Source of the DNA: Phaeosaccion multiseriatum | Lineage: Eukaryota > Protista > Ochrophyta, other classes | NCBI GenBank assembly: GCA_965112735.1 | Contig: OZ218965.1 | Location: 2,294,001 to 2,358,000, forward strand | Direction of reading: 5' to 3' | Length of the DNA: 64,000 bases | Notes under the pieces: model-generated | Databases searched by the model: none | The model's input: the letters and a program-made list of their open reading frames with translations, nothing else | Told to the model about the DNA's origin: nothing | In this document: piece by piece, positions 6,383-34,195 of the stretch | Layout: every line of letters begins with the position of its first letter | How positions within the stretch are numbered: position 1 is the stretch's first letter | Made by a program: the position numbers and the translations under genes

Positions 6383-7240
6383 GCCGTTCCGTGACCGCCT
6401 CTGTCTGCAGGTGGCGGAGGAGATGGGCAAGTCCCTCGGCTCTCTGGCGCAGGGAGTGGCGGGGTGGATGGACGGCCTGCAGAAGAGGAGGTAACAAGAG
6501 GGGCAGGGAGGGAGGGGCGGGCTGTGTTTTGGCTCTTGTGTCTTGTGCCCGCCCGACTGAAGCAAGACGCAAACACTGCAGCGGTGCAGCGGACAGGACC
6601 TGCCTCCACCCCTCACCACAGCTCCCCTCCTGCCTCCCTCTTGCCCTCTCCTCCCTCGATATTCCCCCTCCCCCTTCGATATTCCTCCTCCATCGATATG
6701 ACTCCTCACCTCCCTGCCTCTGGTGGTCCATCGGCGGCAGCGGCTCTGCCAGCGGCTGGCGGCCTCCGCAGATCGTAGGGGGCTCCCCTGTGGGGGGGGA
6801 TCCACCCTCCCCACCGGGGCCTCCCACTGGAGAGGCAATAATAACGGCGGAGCTGGGCCGCCGCCTAAGGCGCTCAGTGGACCTCCTCGAGAGTGGAGCG
6901 GGCATGTCCAGCCAAGACCAGGTGTGTGTGTGTGTGTGTGTGTGTGTTGGCTGGGAACGTCCAGCCAAGACCAGGTGTATGTGTGTGTGCGCGTGTGTAT
7001 ATGTTGTGTGGCCGTCCCTCTCGTGCCCCTCTGATCCCCTGTCTTGCCCTGGTGCGTGACCCTTGCCTGCCCATACGCCTGCCTGCCTGTCCCCCCTCCT
7101 CTCAGGCGGAGGTGGTGCGGTCTGTGTGCAGGGAGGTGCGGGGTGTGGCGGCGGTGCTGCTCAGGGAGGCACCTGTCCCTGCCGCCCTTGCCGCTCGGGC
7201 GCAGCTCATGCAGGGGGAACAGGGTGGATATAGTTCTTAG
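3469..7240 (+). CDS. TBC-domain Rab GTPase-activating protein (TBC1D5-like), multi-exon; 3' end uncertain
   Basis: RALCWRLLL; IQVDLKRLFP (Arg finger); YRQ|GMHELLAP (Gln finger, across intron); EADAFWLF; LYVLRWSRLLFVRE; LWDGLF. Confidence 0.9.
4853..4972. repeat. Intronic 10-bp tandem repeat (gggatggcag)n, ~12 copies
   Basis: Starts right after the splice donor at ~4851. Confidence 0.9.
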
Positions 7241-12284: not shown

Positions 12285-14030
12285 ATGCCAGCGCGGTGTA
12301 GGCCTTTGCTGGGGTCGTGCCTGGCGGTAGCGGTGCTGTCCACCCCGGTCTGCAGCCGCGTATGCTCGTCATTGGCCCGGGACGCGGCTGGGCGGTTCCC
12401 TGCCCCTCTCCCCCCCAACAGGGCGGTAGCTGCTGCTTTGGAGCGAAGAGGGGGTGGTGCTGAAGGTGGTTCTCCTGGGCCTTCATCCTGGGTTCGGGGC
12501 GGCTCAACAGAGACGGCTGTGATGGGGGCGGATGAAGGAGAGGAGGATGAAGACGAGGGAGGCGTGAGGCGAGGCACGTGTCAGCAGGAGCAGCAGCAGC
12601 AGCAACAGCAGCAGGAACAGCAGCAACAGCGGCAGCAGGAGCAGGAGCAGGAGGAGGAGGGAGTCGGGGAGGAGGGGAGCTGCGACGTGGGCCTGTTCGA
12701 CGCTCTTTACCAAGGCCAGATCTACCTGCAAGAGCACGACTTTGCCATGCAGCAGCAGTGGGCGCAGGAGAACGAGGTCAGCGCGGCCCCGCTGGCGGGA
12801 GGCTTACCACTGTCGCCCCTGAGCAGCAAGCAGCTGGACGATATGCTCCGCGTGCTGCCCACTCTGGGGATTGGGCTCGCGCTAGCCCCACTCCTCGCGG
12901 CATATGTCAGCCGCGCCTTCGCGGTGTTCTGGAGGTACTTCTTGGCGGGTGGGCTGTGCTGCATGCTCAGCCACGGGGCGGCGGTGCCATTCGACGTGGT
13001 CAAGACGTCAATCCAGCTGGGCAGGTACTCCAGCATGGGGGAGGCCTTCGTGCGCCTCGTGCAGGAGCGAGGGCCGGGCTGCTTGTTTGCTGGCTTGGCG
13101 CCCACAGCGGTGGGGTACACCATCCAGGGCTTCCTCAAGTTCGGCTTCTACGAAGCCTTCAAGCCCGGCATGCGGGCGTGGCTGGTGGGCGCGGGGCTCC
13201 CCCTCGCCGTGTTCGCGTCGGTGGTGCTCTCCTCGGCTCTGGCAGATGCCATTGGGTCCACCGCACTCACACCCATGGAGACGGTGCGCATCCGGATGGT
13301 TTCCGACTCGCGATTCGCGCCGTCTCTGCGGCAGGGCTTGATGCGCTTGGTGCGCGAGGGCGATCGCGGCGTGTTGTCTCTCTTCGACGGCCTGGTGAGT
13401 TACTCAGTCACTCACTTGCTCGCTTGCTGACAGCCCTCTGGTCTCGCTCTGAGGCGACTGTTTTTGTTCATCATCGGTATTATTACATTATTACTGCTCT
13501 TTTCCTCCCCATTACCCTACTGCTTGTCCCCTTACTCTCCTCCCACTCCTCCTCCTCCTCCTGCTGGGCCACAGGGCTTGGTGCTGCTGAAACAAGTGCC
13601 GTACACCATCACCAAGCTGAGCATGTTCGAGGTGCTTAGCAAGGCTGTCAGAGGCGCCCTCCCGGCCTCTGCCTCGGCCGCCGCCAAGTTCGGCCTTACC
13701 ATGGCTTGCGCGCTGGGGGCGGGCTTCATGTCGACGATTGCTTCCCAACCTGGGGACACCCTCATGGCGCGGAGGGCGACGACGGCGGCAGGAGCAACAG
13801 CAGCAGAGAGAGAAGGAGCAGACGTAGCCGCGGCAGCAGTAGCGCATGGGAGCCAACCATGTAGCGGGACAGAGGCAAAGGCAGGGAGGGGCAGGAGTGG
13901 CACGGCGGCCCGAGTGGCAGGCTTGTTCACGGGCCTGCGAGCCCGGCTTGTGCACGTGTCGCTGCTGGTCATGATGCAGCTCGTGCTCTACGACTTGTTC
14001 AAGACGCTGCTGGGTATCGACAAGGCGTAA
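12285..14030 (+). CDS. Mitochondrial-carrier family protein (SLC25A3/phosphate-carrier-like) with a long signal-peptide-like N-terminal extension, 2 exons
   Basis: YFLAGGLCCMLSHGAAVPFDVVKT, GLAPTAVGYTIQGFLKFGFYE, LTPMETVRIR, LKQVPYT, SQPGDTL; intron 13395-13573. Confidence 0.9.
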
Positions 14031-14962: not shown

Positions 14963-16673
14963 TCAGGGGACGGAGCGACCATTGGGGTGACCAGCGGCCT
15001 CACTACTCGTGTGTTTCTCCTTCTTCGACCCGTAGTTCGACATCCTTCCCTGCTGCGGCGGCTGCGGCTGCGGCTGGCCCTGACCCTGCCCTTGACTCTG
15101 ACCCTGACCCCGACCCTGACCCTGACCCTGACCCTGACCCTGACCCTGACCCTGACCCTGACCCCGACCCTGACCCTGACCCTGACCCCGGCCCCGACCC
15201 TGGCCCCTCCCCCTCCCCCCTTGATGGTCGTCGCCCCTCCCCCTCCCCGGCGTGCCCCCCCCCCAGCTCGGAGGCCCTTTCGAATGTCCTTTGCCCCCCC
15301 ACCTCGCGGGCCCAGCCCCCTGATGCTTGAGGTGCACCCCTCCCTTGTGTTGGTGCTGCTGCTGGTGCTGCTGCTGGTGCTGCTGGTGCTGCTGGTGCTG
15401 CTGCTGCTGCTGCTGCTGCTTGGGGTGCGCCCCCCCATTGCTCTGACGCGGAGCATGCCCCTGCCGCGGACTCTCCCCAGCCGGACCCCTTTGGTACTGC
15501 TTGGCGCCATTGGCGGTGCCGTGGTTAGCCATGCCGTGCCGAGGGCTGAGAGCCCCTCCGCTCCTATGGCGAGGGCTGTCAGCAGCAGGCACGGATGACG
15601 TCATGGCCGCTCCCCCCGGACCCCTACCTCTGTCCCTGCTGCTGCCTCTGTCTCTGTCTCCGAAGCGATGGCTGTCAACAGAGCCCCTCGGAGGCCCCCC
15701 GGGGCCTGCGTCTCGTGCGTCTCGAGCTCCTGGGCTCTGTGGTATGCCTCTGCTACCCTCCTCCCTCGCTCTGCTACCCTCCTCCCTGCCGTAGGTCTTG
15801 CTCCTCTGGGGGGCGTAGTGACCGTGGCCGTTCCCTCTGCTGCCCCCCGCCCCTCCGGCCCGCCCCTCCCCCTCATACCTGCCGTCCTGCTGCCTGCCAT
15901 CCTGCTGCCTGCCGTACGCGTGCTGCTGGTGCTCCTCATGGTGTGCGTGTGGCGAGTCACCTCTCCGCTCACCTCTCCCCTCACCCCTCCGTTCGCTTCT
16001 CCCGTCCCCACGGCGCCAGTCTCCCCTCCACCCTCCAGACTCGGGCATATGCCCAGGCATATGGGCAGTGTGCGGTGGCCTCTCATGGCGCCCGTCCCTC
16101 TCTCTCTCCCGCCCTCCTCCTCTCTCTCTCTCTCCCTCGCACAGGGACATCTCAGACGCCCCTCCCCTCGGTAAACCGAAGCTGCTTCCGCTTCCAGCCC
16201 CCCTCCCCTGTCGAGCAGTGGGGCTGCTGCTACCAAGGGGTCTCCCTCGAGACTCGCTCTTCCTGCCTCCGTCTCCGTGCCCACCGTTGTCATACTGATG
16301 GGCATGGCCATATCCGGCAGCTCTCTTCCTCTCCCCTGCCTCGTCTCTCGCTCTGTAGTGATTATCCTGCGCCTCTCCGCCCCTCTTCCACGGCGCCGCA
16401 CCTCCTCCTCCCCCCTGCACCTCGTCAGCCTCTCGCCTCGCACCTCCTCTGGGCGGCATGGGCTGCATGGACTGTATGGACGGTACCACATCCCCCCCCG
16501 TAGAGGATATCTCGCCTGATTCTCGCCCACCCCCGTCCTCCATGTCCATGTCCATCTTCCTCCTTTGCGTACGGGCCACCGGACCATCCTCATTTGGTGT
16601 CATACCGTACTTGAGCCTCACATCCTCCGGCAACCCTCCCACACGGTCCAGAGCTCTCACTCGCGTTTCCCCC

Positions 16674-16737
<64 letters not shown>

Positions 16738-16760
16738 CGTTGTGATGCTGTCGTTGGTGC

Positions 16761-16791
<31 letters not shown>

Positions 16792-16879
16792 GTACATTTT
16801 GTTGCTGATGTTGTTGATGTCGCTGTCGTTGTTGTTGGTCGTGGTGTTGCCGTTGTTGTTGTTGATGATGATGATGTTG

Positions 16880-16927
<48 letters not shown>

Positions 16928-19436
16928 ATCATGATGATGATGTTGATGATGAGGATGATGATGACGCTGATGCTGATGCTGATGCTGCGGGTGTTGCTTC
17001 CCTTGGGAAACGTCGTGCACTGAGCGTGGCGAGTGTCGTTGCCTGCTGTCCCCCCCTCTTTCTCTACTGTCCCCCCCTCTTTCTCTGCTTTCCCCCCCTC
17101 TTTCTCTACTGTCCCCCCCTCTTTCTCTCCTGTCCCCCCCTCTTTCTCTCCTGCCGTCCCCTCTGTCTCTGCTGCCGTCTCCTCTTCCTCCGCCATCTTC
17201 GCCTCTGCCGCCGTCCCACTGCCGCGCGTAGCCCTCCCTCGCTCCTCTCTCTTGCACATTATCTCCACCGTTTGTTTTGCTGTGGTGCAGCCGCCCCCCC
17301 TCTCTCGTATTGCCATGCCCGCTTCCATGTCGATTCGCTTCCCCCCTGCCATCACTCCCCCACTCCCCCTCCCCCCCCTCCTCCCCTTCTCTGATATGTA
17401 CACCCTCCCTCCGTCCCTCCTGAGGGCGCTGCTGTGCGTCGCGGCTGCCTGCGGGGCTCATCATCTGCGGCGAGCATCGGTTTGCGTTTGCGCCTTCCCG
17501 GTACCCCTCGCCCCGCACCTCCCTTCCAGGCACCTCCGGCCCTTCTCGGCGTTGGCGCTTACCCCTTCCATCCTCTCCTTGTCCGCATCGCCTGTCCGCA
17601 CTCGGACTGTCTCTGCCTCTGCCTCTGTCTCTGTCTCTGTCTCTCCCCCCGCGCTGCTGCTGCCACTCAGGCAGATAGTGTAGCGCTCGCCCCCCTCCCC
17701 TGGGGAATGTGCTGTCCCCCTCCACGGCCTCGGAAAGGTCGTAGGCAGCTCCCCTCTCCCCTCGTCTGTGCTCTCTCTCCCCCTGCTGGAGCCCTTTCCA
17801 TGCCATCCCCTCGTTACCATTAGCCCTCTCCATGCCCTCCCCATCAGCGGCGAAATCTCTCCCGCGGCGCTGGTGTTCCTCCTCTCTCTCCTCACTCACT
17901 CTCCTCCTCTTTCGATGTTCGAGTGCAGCGTCCCTTTCAGTCCTTCCAGCTTCAAGCCGGGCCTCCTCCTGCTTGACAGAAGCGTCAGCCTCCTGCTTGA
18001 CACATGCGGCCTCATCTTCCTCCTTCGCCTCAGCGGCGGAGGGAGCAGCAGCGGCAGAAGCAGCAGTAGCAGCAGTCATATGGGCAGTAGCAGCCGCCTC
18101 GCTGAGATGCTCCTTCCCCGGGGGGCTTTGCATTGCCGCTTGCTGCGAGGAGCTCTCCATGACGCGGTGCTTGAACAGGCCCTTGGGTCCTCGGGGGGTG
18201 ACGCACATGCCGTTCTCGCTCACACGCTTGTGCAGGAGCTTCTTGAGCGGCATGGTGACTCGCTCCTCAGACACCTTCTCTACGCTGGGCTGTCCCTTGG
18301 CCTGCCCCTCGTGATCCCGCCCCCCCGCCCCCTCCTCCTCCTCCTCCTCCTCCCCCTCCTCCTCCTCCTCCTCCTCCTCGTCATCGTCATCATCCCCATC
18401 CTCCTCATCGTCCTCCTCGTCCTCGCCCTCGTCCTTGCCCCCCCCCCCCCGCACGTAGCCCTGGTGCGTAACCTCGCCCCCCCTGGGCACTCCCTCGAAG
18501 CGCAGGGCGCATTGTGGACATGCCCACAGCTCCTCAGTCGGCTCATCAACTGAGGGCGGCACCAAGCACTTGAGATGGTACACACAATGGCAAAAGTCGC
18601 ACATTAGCAGGTTGCCGCCCCGACAGCACACGCAGCAGCCATCGTCGTGCTCTCCTTCGAACATGTCCCCCGGGGGGTCTGCCGCTCTGTAGCCCACGCC
18701 TTCTCCCCACCAGCGAAAGGCCTTCTGCATGGCAGGGTTGGAGCCCAGCGCCTCCAGGGCCTTGTCTCTGCACAGCACACGCACACAAGTTGGTAGTATC
18801 CGTAAAGTCACATTCAAGGAAAGCAAACGGGAGGGAGAGAGAGGGAGAGAGAGAGAGAGAGAGAGAAGGATGTGAGCCGCGCAAGGGATGAACCCGAGAG
18901 AGGAGACGGCAGGATGAGAGGCCAGGGATGCCTGCACCACACCGACAACCACGCAAAAGACGTATGTAACCCTATGTAACCCATATGCTTGCCTCTGGTG
19001 TCGCTGGCGGTCCTGCTGGGCAAGCTCCTCGTAGGGCCTCTTGTCCGCCGCGGTCATATCCCGCCACTCCGCAGCAACCACGGACACCACCTGCGGGCAG
19101 AAACGAGGGAGGGAGCGAGCACCCGGGAGGAGAGGGTGCGTGGCGAGAGGAGATGATGAGGAGCGGTGCTGAGGAGTGGGGCCCTTTCTGTAATAGTGTT
19201 CCGCTGACAGACGTGCCGAGCAGCGGGCAAGCAAGCCCGCCATCCACTGCACGCACCTGTCTCCGAGAGAGATCATCGGTGTCTCCAGTGGCCTTGAGCT
19301 CCTTCACCCTCTCATCCACGAAGAAGAGGTACGCGTTGCGCACGCCCTTGACGCTGCTCTTGTTCTTCGGCTTCTTCTCTGCCTTCGTGCCCTTCCCTCC
19401 CGCAACCTTCCCACTGGCCCGTTCTGCTGCTGCTGC

Positions 19437-20045: not shown

Positions 20046-20178
20046 CCCCACACCACTCACGAGAGCATCATTGGTATATCACGAATCTGACATCAGCTCA
20101 GGATAGCAGCAAAGGTGAGGGCCCTAGCTCAAGCAATGGAACGCGGTCTTGCCCAAGCCTATCAGAGCACAACATAAA

Positions 20179-21855
20179 ATGCCTCGCTGGATTGTGCTTG
20201 TGCAGGGACTGCTGCTGAGCTTCCTTGCTCCGGAGGGTAGCAGCAGGAGCTGCAGCGGAGGAGCAACCCTCACTGCAGTGGCGAGAGGAGCACTCGGGGG
20301 ACTGGCGAGTCCTGCGGGGGCGAGGGGAGGCGGAGGAGAAGGAGGCCAGCGGCGGCGGCGGCGGCAGCAGCAGCAGCAGGAGGAGGAGAAGGAGGAGGGT
20401 GAGGATGGGGCGGAGGAGGGGGAGGGGGAGAGGAATAGGAATAGGAGACTGTCGCCCTTACGGATGACAAAAGGGCGGCGGAGAGGCCTTGAAAGGAGCC
20501 AGATGATGATTGGGGACACACGAGGCGCCCAGGCCCTTGGCTCTCTGCGGCTGAGGGGGGGCGCGGCTATAGATGTGGCAGAGCAAGTGGACGAGGAGGA
20601 TGCATCTGCCGAGGAGGAGCCGCCAGAGCCGCTCCCGTACGACCAAGACACAGCGCTGTGGCTGGTGGACCAGCTGTGCCTGTACCAGACCAGCGTGAGC
20701 CTCATCTCGGAGAAGCTGGCCGTGAAGGTGAGCAGGATATGGCAGACGGGACGGGAAAGGGGTGGGGAAGCTCTGCTTTTAGTGCTTGGCGTGTGCTGGG
20801 TGCACTGCGACTTGTTGCGGCTGTCCTGACCTCCATCATTGAACCAATTCTTGTCTCCTTCCTCCTCTTCCATCCCGACGCACCACTCCACTCCACTCCC
20901 CCTGCTGCTCCTACGATTTCCTCCTGCAGGGCTACAAGGTGCGCGATATGATCCCCAAGCCGCCCGGCCTCATGTGCACGCAGAACTCAGAGGAGCACCC
21001 CGTGCCGTGCCGCATCTACATGGACGCAGCGCCCAAGGCCAAGCTCGTGGCGCCCTGCAAATGCAAGGGCTCGCAGCGATGGATCAGCGTGCAGGCGCTG
21101 AACGACCTCAGGAGGAGGGAGCCGGAGAAGTGGAGCAAGTGCCCCACCTGCCAGGCACGTGCTGTGGATCACCAACTGCTGCTGTTGCTGGCTGCTATTC
21201 CTGTGTGTGGCGGTCTCTAACCTCTCTCGTGTCCGGGCCTTCCCTCCCTTCCCGCTTCCTTCCATCCTTCCTTCCGTCTCTCCTCAGACCAAGATCGACT
21301 ACGCCAAGCTGGAGAGCCACATGGACAAGATGAGCCGCCTCCCCACCGTGCTGCTCAACAACAGGAAGGAGGCCCGCGCCGTGCTGGCCGCAGCTGTGGG
21401 GCTGGTGCTGTGGACCTTCAGCCACTGGATCCGAGTGGCGGTGATCCGGGTGCTGGTGAGCGGCGTGTTCTGGAGGCAGTACCACATCACACATCGCCTC
21501 ATCCACCTGCCGCTGCCCCTCAAGATCCTGCTGGGCAGGTGGATCATGAAGGTAGGCACGGAGGGGTGGGAGGCAGGTGGGAGGCAGGCACACACACCGC
21601 ATACCGCGCTGTCTGTTAGTCCATCTCTCTCATCTGTCTGCGCACCCTCCCCTGCTTTATGAACATGATGTAACTCTGACTCCCCACCCGCTTCTCTCCT
21701 CTCCCCTCACCCCCCCCTGGTAGGCCTCTCGTGCCAAGTTCCTCCGCGTGGAGGGGGACCTCCGCAGCAGGCTGGCAGCGCTGGAGAGTGAGCACCTGGA
21801 GAAGGCGCTGCCCATCACGGTGGATGCCAAGGACATTGAGCAGGAGGCCTTCTAG
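20179..21855 (+). CDS. RING-CH (RINGv/MARCH)-like membrane protein with signal peptide and degenerate RING, 4 exons
   Basis: Exons ~20179-20727, 20930-21154 (GC donor), 21288-21551 and 21724-21855. 'CRIY..LVAPCKCKGSQRWISVQAL..CPTC' is followed by a TM segment. Confidence 0.75.
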
Positions 21856-24605: not shown

Positions 24606-25073
24606 CTATTGCTGGGTCATGGACTGAATGATGTCCACATCCAGGGGCTGCAAGTTGTTGGTGCTCATGAGGGGCAGCAGCAGCAGGCAGGGGATGAGCG
24701 ACAGGATGATGTACAAAATTACCCTCGCCTTCTTGGACTCGCTCACATCCCCCTCTCCCTTGGCTGCGGCTTCTTGCGGCGTCATGAAATCCACCGCTGA
24801 GCTCAGCTCGAGCTGCTCCTGCTGCTGCCCGCCCTCCTGCTCCCCCCCCTCCACCGCAAATACTCTCACGTCGGCCCTCCACCTCCTCAGTCGCTGGCCC
24901 AGCGCCGGCGACGAAAGCCCAGCCGAAGAAACTGGTGTGTGGGCGGCCTTGGCATTGACACCGCATGGGGCAGCGATTACAGACGAAGGTGCGACGAAGG
25001 CCGACACACTCAGCAAGGACAAGCACGCCACCAGACACACGAAACACCGCAGCAGACACTTTCCTTGACCCAT
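24606..25073 (-). CDS. Small plastid-targeted single-TM protein of unknown function
   Basis: Signal peptide ending LSVSA-FVAP (ASAFAP-type), an S/A/R-rich transit peptide, and a C-terminal TM 'VILYIILSLIPCLLLLPL'. Confidence 0.65.
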   Translation of the reverse strand: MGQGKCLLRCFVCLVACLSLLSVSAFVAPSSVIAAPCGVNAKAAHTPVSSAGLSSPALGQRLRRWRADVRVFAVEGGEQEGGQQQEQLELSSAVDFMTPQEAAAKGEGDVSESKKARVILYIILSLIPCLLLLPLMSTNNLQPLDVDIIQSMTQQ

Positions 25074-33119: not shown

Positions 33120-34195
33120 ATGGTGGGAAGCGCGACGGCGTTCGTGGGGAGGGGGGGTCGGCGGAAGCGCACTGCCGCGGCAGCTGCGGCGGGGGTGCTG
33201 CTCTCGCTGTCATGCCTCGGCGCAGGGACTCACGACATGCACAGTACCCTGCGGAAAGTGCAGCGGCAGCGGCAGCGGCAACACTCCCCCCCTCTTTCTT
33301 GCGCCGGATGTGCATTGCTCGCACGCGGAGGAGGGGGGGGTGGCTCTTCAGGAGTGCTGAGGCTGTTCAGGGACATTTTCCTGCCGCCTCGGGGGGGGGG
33401 CGTGATGGAGGGGGGCATGGACGTGGAGAGCATGGGGCTGAGCACGCGAGTGGGCCGCTTCCTCAAGGCTGTTCTGCACGCTGTCACGGGAGGGGGCGGG
33501 GCGAAGGGGGGGGGCAAGAGCGAGGCGGGCGAAAAGGGCAAGAAGAAGAAGAAGAAGCCAGAGGCCACCAAGGACCACCTCGGGCTCTCCCTCAAGCCGG
33601 GCAGCGTCAACTACCGCATCCAGAAGGAGCTCAAGCAATTCATGGCCGCGCCACCGGACAACTGCAAGGTCAAGGTCGGCAAGAACATCAAGGTGGGTGG
33701 GCTGGGAGAGGGGGGCTTGGCACAGAGCCCCTTCCCTCCCTTGCCTCTTGTTCACCTCTTGTTCTTCTCTCATCCCGCTACTGCTGTTACTGCCCGGCGG
33801 AAATTGTCTCTTTGTGCCCTTCTCATTCTCATTCTCACTCTCAGATCTGGATCATCACCATAAAGGGCGCCGAGGGCACAGTGTTCCACGGCGAAACGTT
33901 TCGCCTGCGCGTGGCCTTCCCGGACGACTACCCCACGCGCGCACCCAGCGTATACTTCCTGCAGAAGCCCCCGCCACCGTCGCACCCGCACGTGTACACC
34001 AACGGAGACATTTGCCTGAGCTTGTTGGGCGCTGACTGGAAGCCCAACCTCACAGTGTCCTCTCTGGCGCTGAGCATCCTCAGCATGCTGTCCAGCGCGC
34101 GAGAGAAGGGCATCCCGCAGGACAACGCCAACCACGCAGGGGCCAAGCCCGGGCAGGCGCAGGACAATTGGATGTACCACGACGACAACGCATGA
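33120..34195 (+). CDS. UBE2W: Ubiquitin-conjugating enzyme E2, UBE2W-like, with a long N-terminal extension
   Basis: RIQKEL; FPDDYP; HPHVYTNGDICLSLL (HPH variant, catalytic Cys); SILSMLSS; C-terminal WMYHDD; intron 33692-33844. Start codon tentative. Confidence 0.9.

Follow-up and report, generated by a model that had tools for sequence, protein, structure and literature searches.

Background

Proteins of the periplastid compartment (PPC) in algae with complex plastids carry bipartite leaders, in which a signal-peptide-like start is followed by a variable extension, and such leaders also stand on proteins of cytosolic type, such as E2 enzymes, that depend on a ubiquitin system (Gould 2006; Moog 2011, PMC3101018; ASAFind 2.0, PMC12136025). 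Published descriptions define them by the residue that follows the signal-peptide cut, which in the PPC type is neither aromatic nor Leu, and call the remainder poorly characterised (PMC3101018). The compartment contains ubiquitin, E1, E2, and the deubiquitinase ptDUP (PMC3101018, PMC12412216). How periplastid residents are separated from plastid-bound proteins and which enzyme trims their leaders are open questions. Here we describe a gene of the ochrophyte Phaeosaccion multiseriatum, at positions 20179-21855 (+) of a 64,000-nucleotide stretch of contig OZ218965.1 (assembly GCA_965112735.1; the whole stretch is called the window from here on). Its predicted product has a signal-peptide-like start, and its leader runs into LRLRGG, the last six residues of ubiquitin.

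Several described systems resemble this arrangement in part. Ubiquitin and ubiquitin-fusion precursors have the identical hexapeptide, and the downstream protein would likewise be freed by a cut after Gly-Gly. However, no beta-grasp fold precedes the motif in our gene, and the part upstream would be a discarded leader rather than a reusable modifier. Known deubiquitinases depend strongly on the ubiquitin fold. Bacteriocin double-glycine leaders (cut by C39 peptidases) and viral papain-like LXGG sites are short motifs that end in Gly-Gly, have hydrophobic residues upstream, and are cut without a ubiquitin fold, but they belong to bacterial and viral systems. In Toxoplasma, the periplastid-space protein PUBL presents RGG within its N-terminal extension, which its authors considered as a possible deubiquitinase site and treated as a feature of that single protein (PMC5487736). 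Diatom stromal transit peptides with mapped ends also have a motif where the second part of their bipartite leader stops, but theirs is S/T-L-x, often before Met (Huesgen 2013, PMC3774753). In 8.1 million open papers and bioRxiv (subscription journals were outside the scope), we found no description of RGG at the end of periplastid leaders, and the PUBL paper was the only related one.

An earlier note on this DNA proposed that the focal protein, a SLC25-type carrier, and a UBE2W-like E2 of the same window are routed via the endoplasmic reticulum (ER) to the PPC and matured by a deubiquitinase. The elements it pointed to are there. The focal protein has the signal-peptide-like start, LRLRGG in frame at 20545-20562, and the acidic region behind it; the carrier has ERRGG and WVRGG after a hydrophobic N-terminus; and the E2 has LARGG and PRGG, as LLARGG and PPRGG, after a hydrophobic segment. 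LRLRGG does correspond to residues 71-76 of ubiquitin, and the ubiquitin repeats compared here end in lhlvlrlrgg.

A conserved Gly-Gly motif at the leader end

On balance, we favour the reading that LRLRGG is the processing site that ends a periplastid-type leader in the focal gene and is cut after Gly-Gly. Across the sequences compared, we read the leader-end motif as hydrophobic-x-[R/K]-G-G followed by a small or acidic residue. Its distribution suggests that it is widespread and typical of ER-routed PPC proteins in red-derived complex plastids.

Within the RING-like family of the focal gene, GG is aligned at the leader end in all seven leader-bearing sequences, each time followed by acidic residues and then by the conserved domain. 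The focal LRLRGG corresponds to LRVRGG in the closest relative, from Chrysoparadoxa (61% identity in the RING exon), despite a remaining leader that is unalignable. Pelagophyceae sp. CCMP2097 presents LRQRGG, an MMETSP transcript FALKGG, two Tribonema sequences VKLGG, and an Ectocarpus model VMIGG. Over the family, 4 of 48 full-length members contained RGG vs. 0.79 expected (p=0.008). These relatives provide moderate direct support, at the sequence level, for the motif of the focal gene.

The E2 of the window belongs to a family where RGG is almost universal. A word search with its exon 1 retrieved 11 proteins, and the profile built from them retrieved 364. They are UBE2W-type forms of 300-450 residues that carry the name E2 W in JGI and NCBI, and every named source is an ochrophyte (a brown alga, Phaeothamnion, or a diatom). 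RGG was found in the leader of 111 of the 115 homologues with a full leader, nearly always as a single copy, when shuffles of the leaders expect 4.8. Its position has a median of residue 66, its spacing to the UBC core hardly varies (median 131), and the leader preceding it is unconserved. The consensus has hydrophobic residues at -4 to -2, then P/V/L/I/F, R-G-G, S/E/A/G/D, I/L, any residue, L/V/I, and acidic residues. LLARGG of the window aligns with LVRGG, GVRGG, and VIRGG of the homologues, and PPRGG falls outside that column. As judged from the alignment, RGG is a strongly conserved feature of the boundary between leader and mature protein in this E2 family.

The motif was also present in periplastid proteins that others had compiled. 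We used Appendix S3 of ASAFind 2.0 (PMC12136025), the sequences that train a PPC predictor. For Guillardia theta, 17 entries have a signal peptide, and in 8 of them the leader ended in RGG right before the recognisable mature protein: Ubi (MCLRVRGG, followed by the ubiquitin Met), Cdc48 (CMRLRGG), starch synthase (MSLRGG), EF-1alpha (MLRLRGG, then GKEK, where the mature protein starts), 14-3-3 (ALRLRGG), RRM1 (PLRLRGG), CyP (ALRLRGG), and Ubc8 (IPLRGG). Five of these eight share RLRGG, five residues identical to the ubiquitin tail. For Thalassiosira pseudonana, it was 7 of about 22 leader-bearing entries: sCdc48 (LSARGG), sCdc48-2 (DIGRGG, then acidic residues), Der1-1 (FDLRGG), sSec14 (FQIRGG), TrxH (LSLRGG), sPUB (LSRGGGGG), and ptDUP (SIPRGG). 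A rough binomial estimate of the excess ranged from p 1e-9 to 2e-3, varying with the composition assumed. Of the 63 stromal transit peptides whose ends were mapped by experiment, none contained RGG and none ended in GG (PMC3774753 Table S7; Fisher p=7e-8).

For one member of the set, a mature N-terminus coincides with the motif. The table of N-termini obtained by terminal amine isotopic labelling of substrates (TAILS) lists SDSDSFTQQR from residue 233 of JGI 21460, which is ptDUP, in the N-acetylated form only (PMC3774753). In the ASAFind sequence, R-G-G occupies residues 230-232 and the peptide's initial Ser is residue 233, so the N-terminus is located directly after IPRGG. Its detection solely as an N-acetylated peptide marks it as an in vivo N-terminus, and its position favours hydrolysis after Gly-Gly over hydrolysis after Arg. 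The only other set member detected was ptE3P, a Thalassiosira membrane ligase associated with the symbiont-specific ER-associated-degradation-like machinery (SELMA). Its N-terminus lies right after the signal peptide with no RGG near, like the RING-like members that have a signal peptide only and lack RGG.

The window taken alone does not prove the motif beyond chance; the comparative data do. The G+C content of the genome is 61.6%, and RGG has a density of 0.27 per 100 residues over the six frames of the window. Shuffling the focal leader produced RGG in 53% of cases, hydrophobic-x-hydrophobic-RGG in 2.8%, and LRLRGG in 0.1%, and LRLRGG occurs a second time at 7111(-), in a frame that is non-coding. 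Since RGG is this frequent in shuffles and in the six frames, and the hexapeptide itself recurs outside coding sequence, the window is insufficient by itself. Measured against the condition set in the earlier note, that RGG should exceed what G-rich codon usage predicts, the window is insufficient, and it is the E2 family, the RING relatives, the curated set, and the stromal control that show the endings not to be noise.

Gene model of the focal protein

The spliced product has 389 residues, with a single, terminal stop, and it aligns gap-free at every junction with the homologues of Chrysoparadoxa australica, Tribonema, Ectocarpus, Fibrocapsa, and the pelagophyte. Start codon and introns were set by homology only. 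The ATG at 20179 is the first in frame after a stop, and one open frame links the hydrophobic N-terminus to the conserved domain. Intron 2 probably uses a GC donor, since no other choice places CPTCQ and IDY two residues apart, as they are in the homologues. From its sequence, the product is predicted to be a membrane protein of an ochrophyte degenerate-RING-CH-like family that begins with a bipartite leader. The extension measures about 105-110 residues from the hydrophobic segment to the first homologue-aligned column; compared to described periplastid leaders, it is unusually long and of low complexity. Candidate signal-peptide cuts are A/PEG and the ASAFAP-like S/FLAP, the latter inside 20179-20229.

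An upstream open reading frame (ORF) of 13 codons, MERGLAQAYQSTT, occupies 20136-20177 (+) and stops one base before the main ATG.

Proposed processing and its alternatives

We propose the following sequence of events. The protein would enter the ER during translation and lose its signal peptide, and it would then cross the second membrane in a SELMA-dependent way. A cut directly after Gly-Gly would strip the rest of the leader, exposing the acidic N-terminus and leaving no transit peptide. Loss of this transit-peptide-like part would account for the fact that such proteins go no further. For the focal protein, we infer from sequence both the cut at LRLRGG and a location in or at the PPC; its final site may be the periplastid space, its membrane, or deeper.

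As the protease, a deubiquitinase, or an enzyme with deubiquitinase-like specificity, is a tentative proposal by analogy. It would be the first candidate because the compartment holds ubiquitin, E1, E2, and ptDUP, because the Guillardia motifs copy the ubiquitin tail, and because the ubiquitin precursor itself needs a cut at LRVRGG. A possible but doubtful extension is that PPC leaders of cryptophytes, diatoms, brown algae, and related groups carry at their end a copy of the ubiquitin tail that a periplastid deubiquitinase removes, in a cycle that the UBE2W-type E2 could join. UBE2W-type enzymes ubiquitinate free N-termini. By analogy, a periplastid copy would be a candidate tagger of incoming leaders. 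The s_Ubc that PMC12412216 discusses is a different protein from the window's E2.

In Guillardia, the periplastid ubiquitin precursor (gt_155024) consists of a signal peptide, a decayed ubiquitin-like segment ending in LRVRGG, and ubiquitin. The leaders that end in RGG may have evolved from it. We also considered that the focal leader was itself a decayed ubiquitin domain and rejected it: it gave no Pfam hit, and in Guillardia the spacing from signal peptide to RGG is only 25-45 residues.

Several observations weigh against the processing reading or against its enzyme. Many or most of the diatom and diatom-like members of the RING-like family proceed from the signal peptide almost at once to the mature domain, with no RGG, and the close Tribonema relatives carry VKLGG instead. 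In the E2 family, F-x-P stands just after the signal peptide in 32 of 114 leaders, at a median of 37 residues ahead of RGG. For the focal protein, a cut at S/FLAP would put Phe at +1, the mark of import past the PPC. Part of the ASAFind set was selected by homology and not by localisation. The N-termini that support a cut after GG amount to one published case; neither the IDs nor the expected peptides of sCdc48, sCdc48-2, TrxH, sSec14, Der1-1, sPUB, and others appear in the N-terminomics tables, and the tryptic peptides expected after RGG for the undetected set members are mostly outside the detectable length. For the gene model, the four public runs that cover the stretch (all DNA contigs from one sample, unspliced) gave no splice joints and so no RNA support for the start or the splice sites. 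Four further points bear on the deubiquitinase: Pfam found no ubiquitin domain or beta-grasp fold in exon 1 upstream of LRLRGG; at P4, Pro is more frequent than any other residue in the E2-family leaders (diatom leaders prefer Pro), vs. Leu in ubiquitin; Guillardia lacks ptDUP despite having the best mimicry (PMC12412216); and the RGG before the ubiquitin-like domain of PUBL was reported as unprocessed and dispensable (PMC5487736). These four, together with the possible S/FLAP cut, oppose the simple version in the earlier note, where a deubiquitinase cuts a ubiquitin-like tail. What stands of it is the position of RGG at the boundary between leader and mature protein in the E2 family, the RING relatives, and the curated set, together with the ptDUP N-terminus.

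The same four points, however, would fit a real processing or sorting signal at the leader end that is read by another enzyme, the likeness to ubiquitin being coincidental or historical. The protease could be of M16 type (like the mitochondrial or stromal processing peptidases, with Arg at -3), a C39-like double-glycine peptidase, or a trypsin-like periplastid protease followed by trimming; trypsin-like proteases have been described with periplastid leaders (PMC3101018). Across lineages the motifs share no more than R-G-G, and the E2 leaders have hydrophobic residues at P5 and P6 besides their Pro at P4, where ubiquitin has L-R-L. We consider this rather unlikely, given that RLRGG stretches the identity with ubiquitin to five residues in most of the Guillardia motifs, that LRVRGG abuts the ubiquitin Met in the Guillardia precursor, that the mapped ptDUP N-terminus lies after GG and not after Arg, and that the ubiquitin enzymes are at hand in the compartment. 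It is very improbable that the motif stays uncut and acts as a binding element, e.g., for SELMA components or for periplastid retention. The PUBL result would agree with that, and so would the strand-like hydrophobic residues that flank the E2-family motif on both sides; against it, ptDUP has an in vivo acetylated N-terminus directly after RGG, and the EF-1alpha motif of Guillardia abuts the first mature residues.

The two other explanations concern the focal gene itself. Whatever holds for other proteins, its LRLRGG could be a functionless chance product of a leader rich in G and R and encoded by GC-rich DNA. More than half of the shuffled leaders contain RGG, RGG has the six-frame density of 0.27 per 100 residues, a second, unconserved RGG lies in the same leader, the hexapeptide recurs in a non-coding frame, and RGG is missing from most members of the RING-like family. 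Yet the motif immediately precedes the acidic linker, precisely on the boundary, it has the aligned LRVRGG and LRQRGG counterparts in the closest relative and in the pelagophyte, and the per-leader probability drops to 0.028 for hydrophobic-x-hydrophobic-RGG and to 0.001 for LRLRGG. Chance is therefore improbable in our view. Less probable than any of these is a mis-modelled leader, with the true start at a downstream Met (e.g., MMIGD, residues 109-110) or with part of exon 1 spliced out, which would leave no signal peptide before LRLRGG. The upstream ORF that ends one base before the ATG, the start set by homology, and an Ectocarpus gene model that begins within the acidic region with no signal peptide would allow for it. 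The single open frame from the hydrophobic N-terminus to the conserved domain and the hydrophobic start of nearly all full-length homologues speak against it, and a product translated from the downstream Met would still include LRLRGG.

If LRLRGG and its counterparts are leader-end processing sites, the motif would matter for prediction and for experiments. It spans cryptophytes to kelps, is missing from stromal transit peptides, and coincides with one mapped N-terminus. Published predictors look no further than the residues around the signal-peptide cut, and adding the motif should improve the prediction of the periplastid proteome. A change of GG to AA offers a simple mutational handle on leader processing. 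The search for the enzyme would be narrowed to proteases able to cut after Arg-Gly-Gly, among which the resident deubiquitinase is the first candidate. If that candidate is right, it would be presequence processing by ubiquitin mimicry, for which neither mitochondria nor primary plastids have a known counterpart. The ubiquitin machinery that pulls proteins over the second plastid membrane would double as a presequence peptidase, and its cut would fix residents in place by removing their transit peptide.

The degenerate RING-CH-like domain

The earlier note named the focal protein a RING-CH protein. Spacing and a RING-CH-like domain are indeed found, but the zinc ligands are incomplete. The domain scores 20.6 bits against Pfam RINGv (PF12906), below the gathering threshold of 21.6 bits. 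From the C4HC3 set it retains C1, C3, C4, C7, and C8; C2 is replaced by Tyr, the His by Ser, and C6 by Ala. Because of the score below the cut-off and the loss of three of the eight zinc ligands, we did not classify it as an active RING-CH ligase, and from its sequence such an activity is unlikely. It resembles the RING-CH ligases of the MARCH/Doa10 type in the domain spacing and in the membrane segment that follows, and UniRef labels the Tribonema homologue as RING-CH-type, but these losses set it apart.

The same ligand losses run through the family. A phmmer search with exon 2 against 1.84 billion representatives retrieved 94 proteins, which form one family with a common degenerate ligand pattern, most of them with a hydrophobic N-terminus. 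When the conserved end of RING exon 1 was the query of a word search, no match came back, and even the query itself was missed. This ochrophyte family of about 90 members keeps the site-2 cysteines and has lost three of the four site-1 ligands, and the pelagophyte member has lost almost every zinc ligand. The pattern suggests a structural pseudo-RING and not a ligase. The focal gene as the orthologue of the SELMA ligase ptE3P was considered as well and found no support, because ptE3P was not among the phmmer matches (no direct comparison was made) and its N-terminus has no RGG leader.

Features in the window and neighbouring genes

Table 1. Positions of the focal gene and of the two other genes with RGG-containing leaders in the window
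Feature	Position	Strand	Basis
Focal gene, four exons (20179-20727, 20930-21154, 21288-21551, 21724-21855)	20179-21855	+	Homology
Signal-peptide-like N-terminus, MPRWIVLVQGLLLSFLA	20179-20229	+	Hydrophobic core (heuristic); 48 full-length homologues start likewise
Low-complexity leader, G/R/Q/E-rich, transit-peptide-like	20230-20544	+	In frame with signal peptide and domain; unalignable to homologues; no Pfam domain
Second RGG, ARGGGG, non-conserved	20320-20337	+	Inside the low-complexity leader
LRLRGG (residues 123-128), proposed leader end and processing site (after the second Gly)	20545-20562	+	Aligns with the GG of relatives
Acidic linker, AAIDVAEQVDEEDASAEEEPPEP, proposed mature N-terminus	20563-20631	+	Acidic stretch after GG also in relatives, E2 consensus, and Thalassiosira sCdc48-2
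Rest of exon 1, in which the conserved helical domain starts (ALWLVDQLCLYQTS...); donor AAG/gtgagc (cut before gtgagc)	20632-20727	+	Aligns colinearly with seven homologues from ochrophytes
Exon 2, degenerate RING-CH-like domain	20930-21154	+	Pfam RINGv below threshold; phmmer relatives with the same pattern; junction spacing as in homologues
Intron 2, probable GC donor CAG/gcacgt (cut before gcacgt)	21155-21287	+	Spacing in homologues
Exon 3, hydrophobic, membrane-spanning-like	21288-21551	+	Colinear with homologues; hydrophobic sequence
Exon 4, conserved C-terminal helix and stop	21724-21855	+	Colinear with homologues
E2 exon 1: signal-peptide-like segment (33174-33227), leader, conserved LLARGG (33315-33332), non-conserved PPRGG (33384-33398)	33120-33692	+	Alignment with homologues
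E2 exon 2: UBC core, catalytic Cys (NGDICLSLL), stop	33845-34195	+	Pfam UQ_con, E=4.9e-25
Carrier first exon: hydrophobic N-terminus, ERRGG (12441-12455), WVRGG (12489-12503), acidic/poly-Q stretch, carrier repeats	12285-13427	+	Pfam Mito_carr (PF00153), E=4.4e-25

The long UBE2W-type E2 appears to be an ochrophyte-wide form, with a signal-peptide-like start and a conserved region of 130 residues before the core that contains an amphipathic helix and a Lys-rich stretch. Diatom homologues with F-x-P have ASAFAP-like leaders that nevertheless end in RGG and not in the stromal S/T-L-x.

For the SLC25-type carrier, WVRGG is followed by S/T and an acidic run, which fits the motif consensus, and an additional Mito_carr repeat lies in the ORF after exon 1. 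The carrier homologues retrieved from the metagenome scan (27 loci, 31-40% identical) are leaderless paralogues and uninformative on its RGG.

An ORF of 1437 codons at 14963-19276 (-) contains poly-Q/His, RG/RGG-type repeats (with RERGGD repeated), and a PHD-like Cys pattern; its many RGG indicate that the tripeptide is common in the low-complexity proteins of this genome. Finally, the ORFs at 25073 (-) and 27532 (-) have signal-peptide-like starts with the ASAFAP-like cuts SVSA/FVAP and CADA/FTF and no RGG downstream, and they are likely ordinary plastid-targeted proteins.

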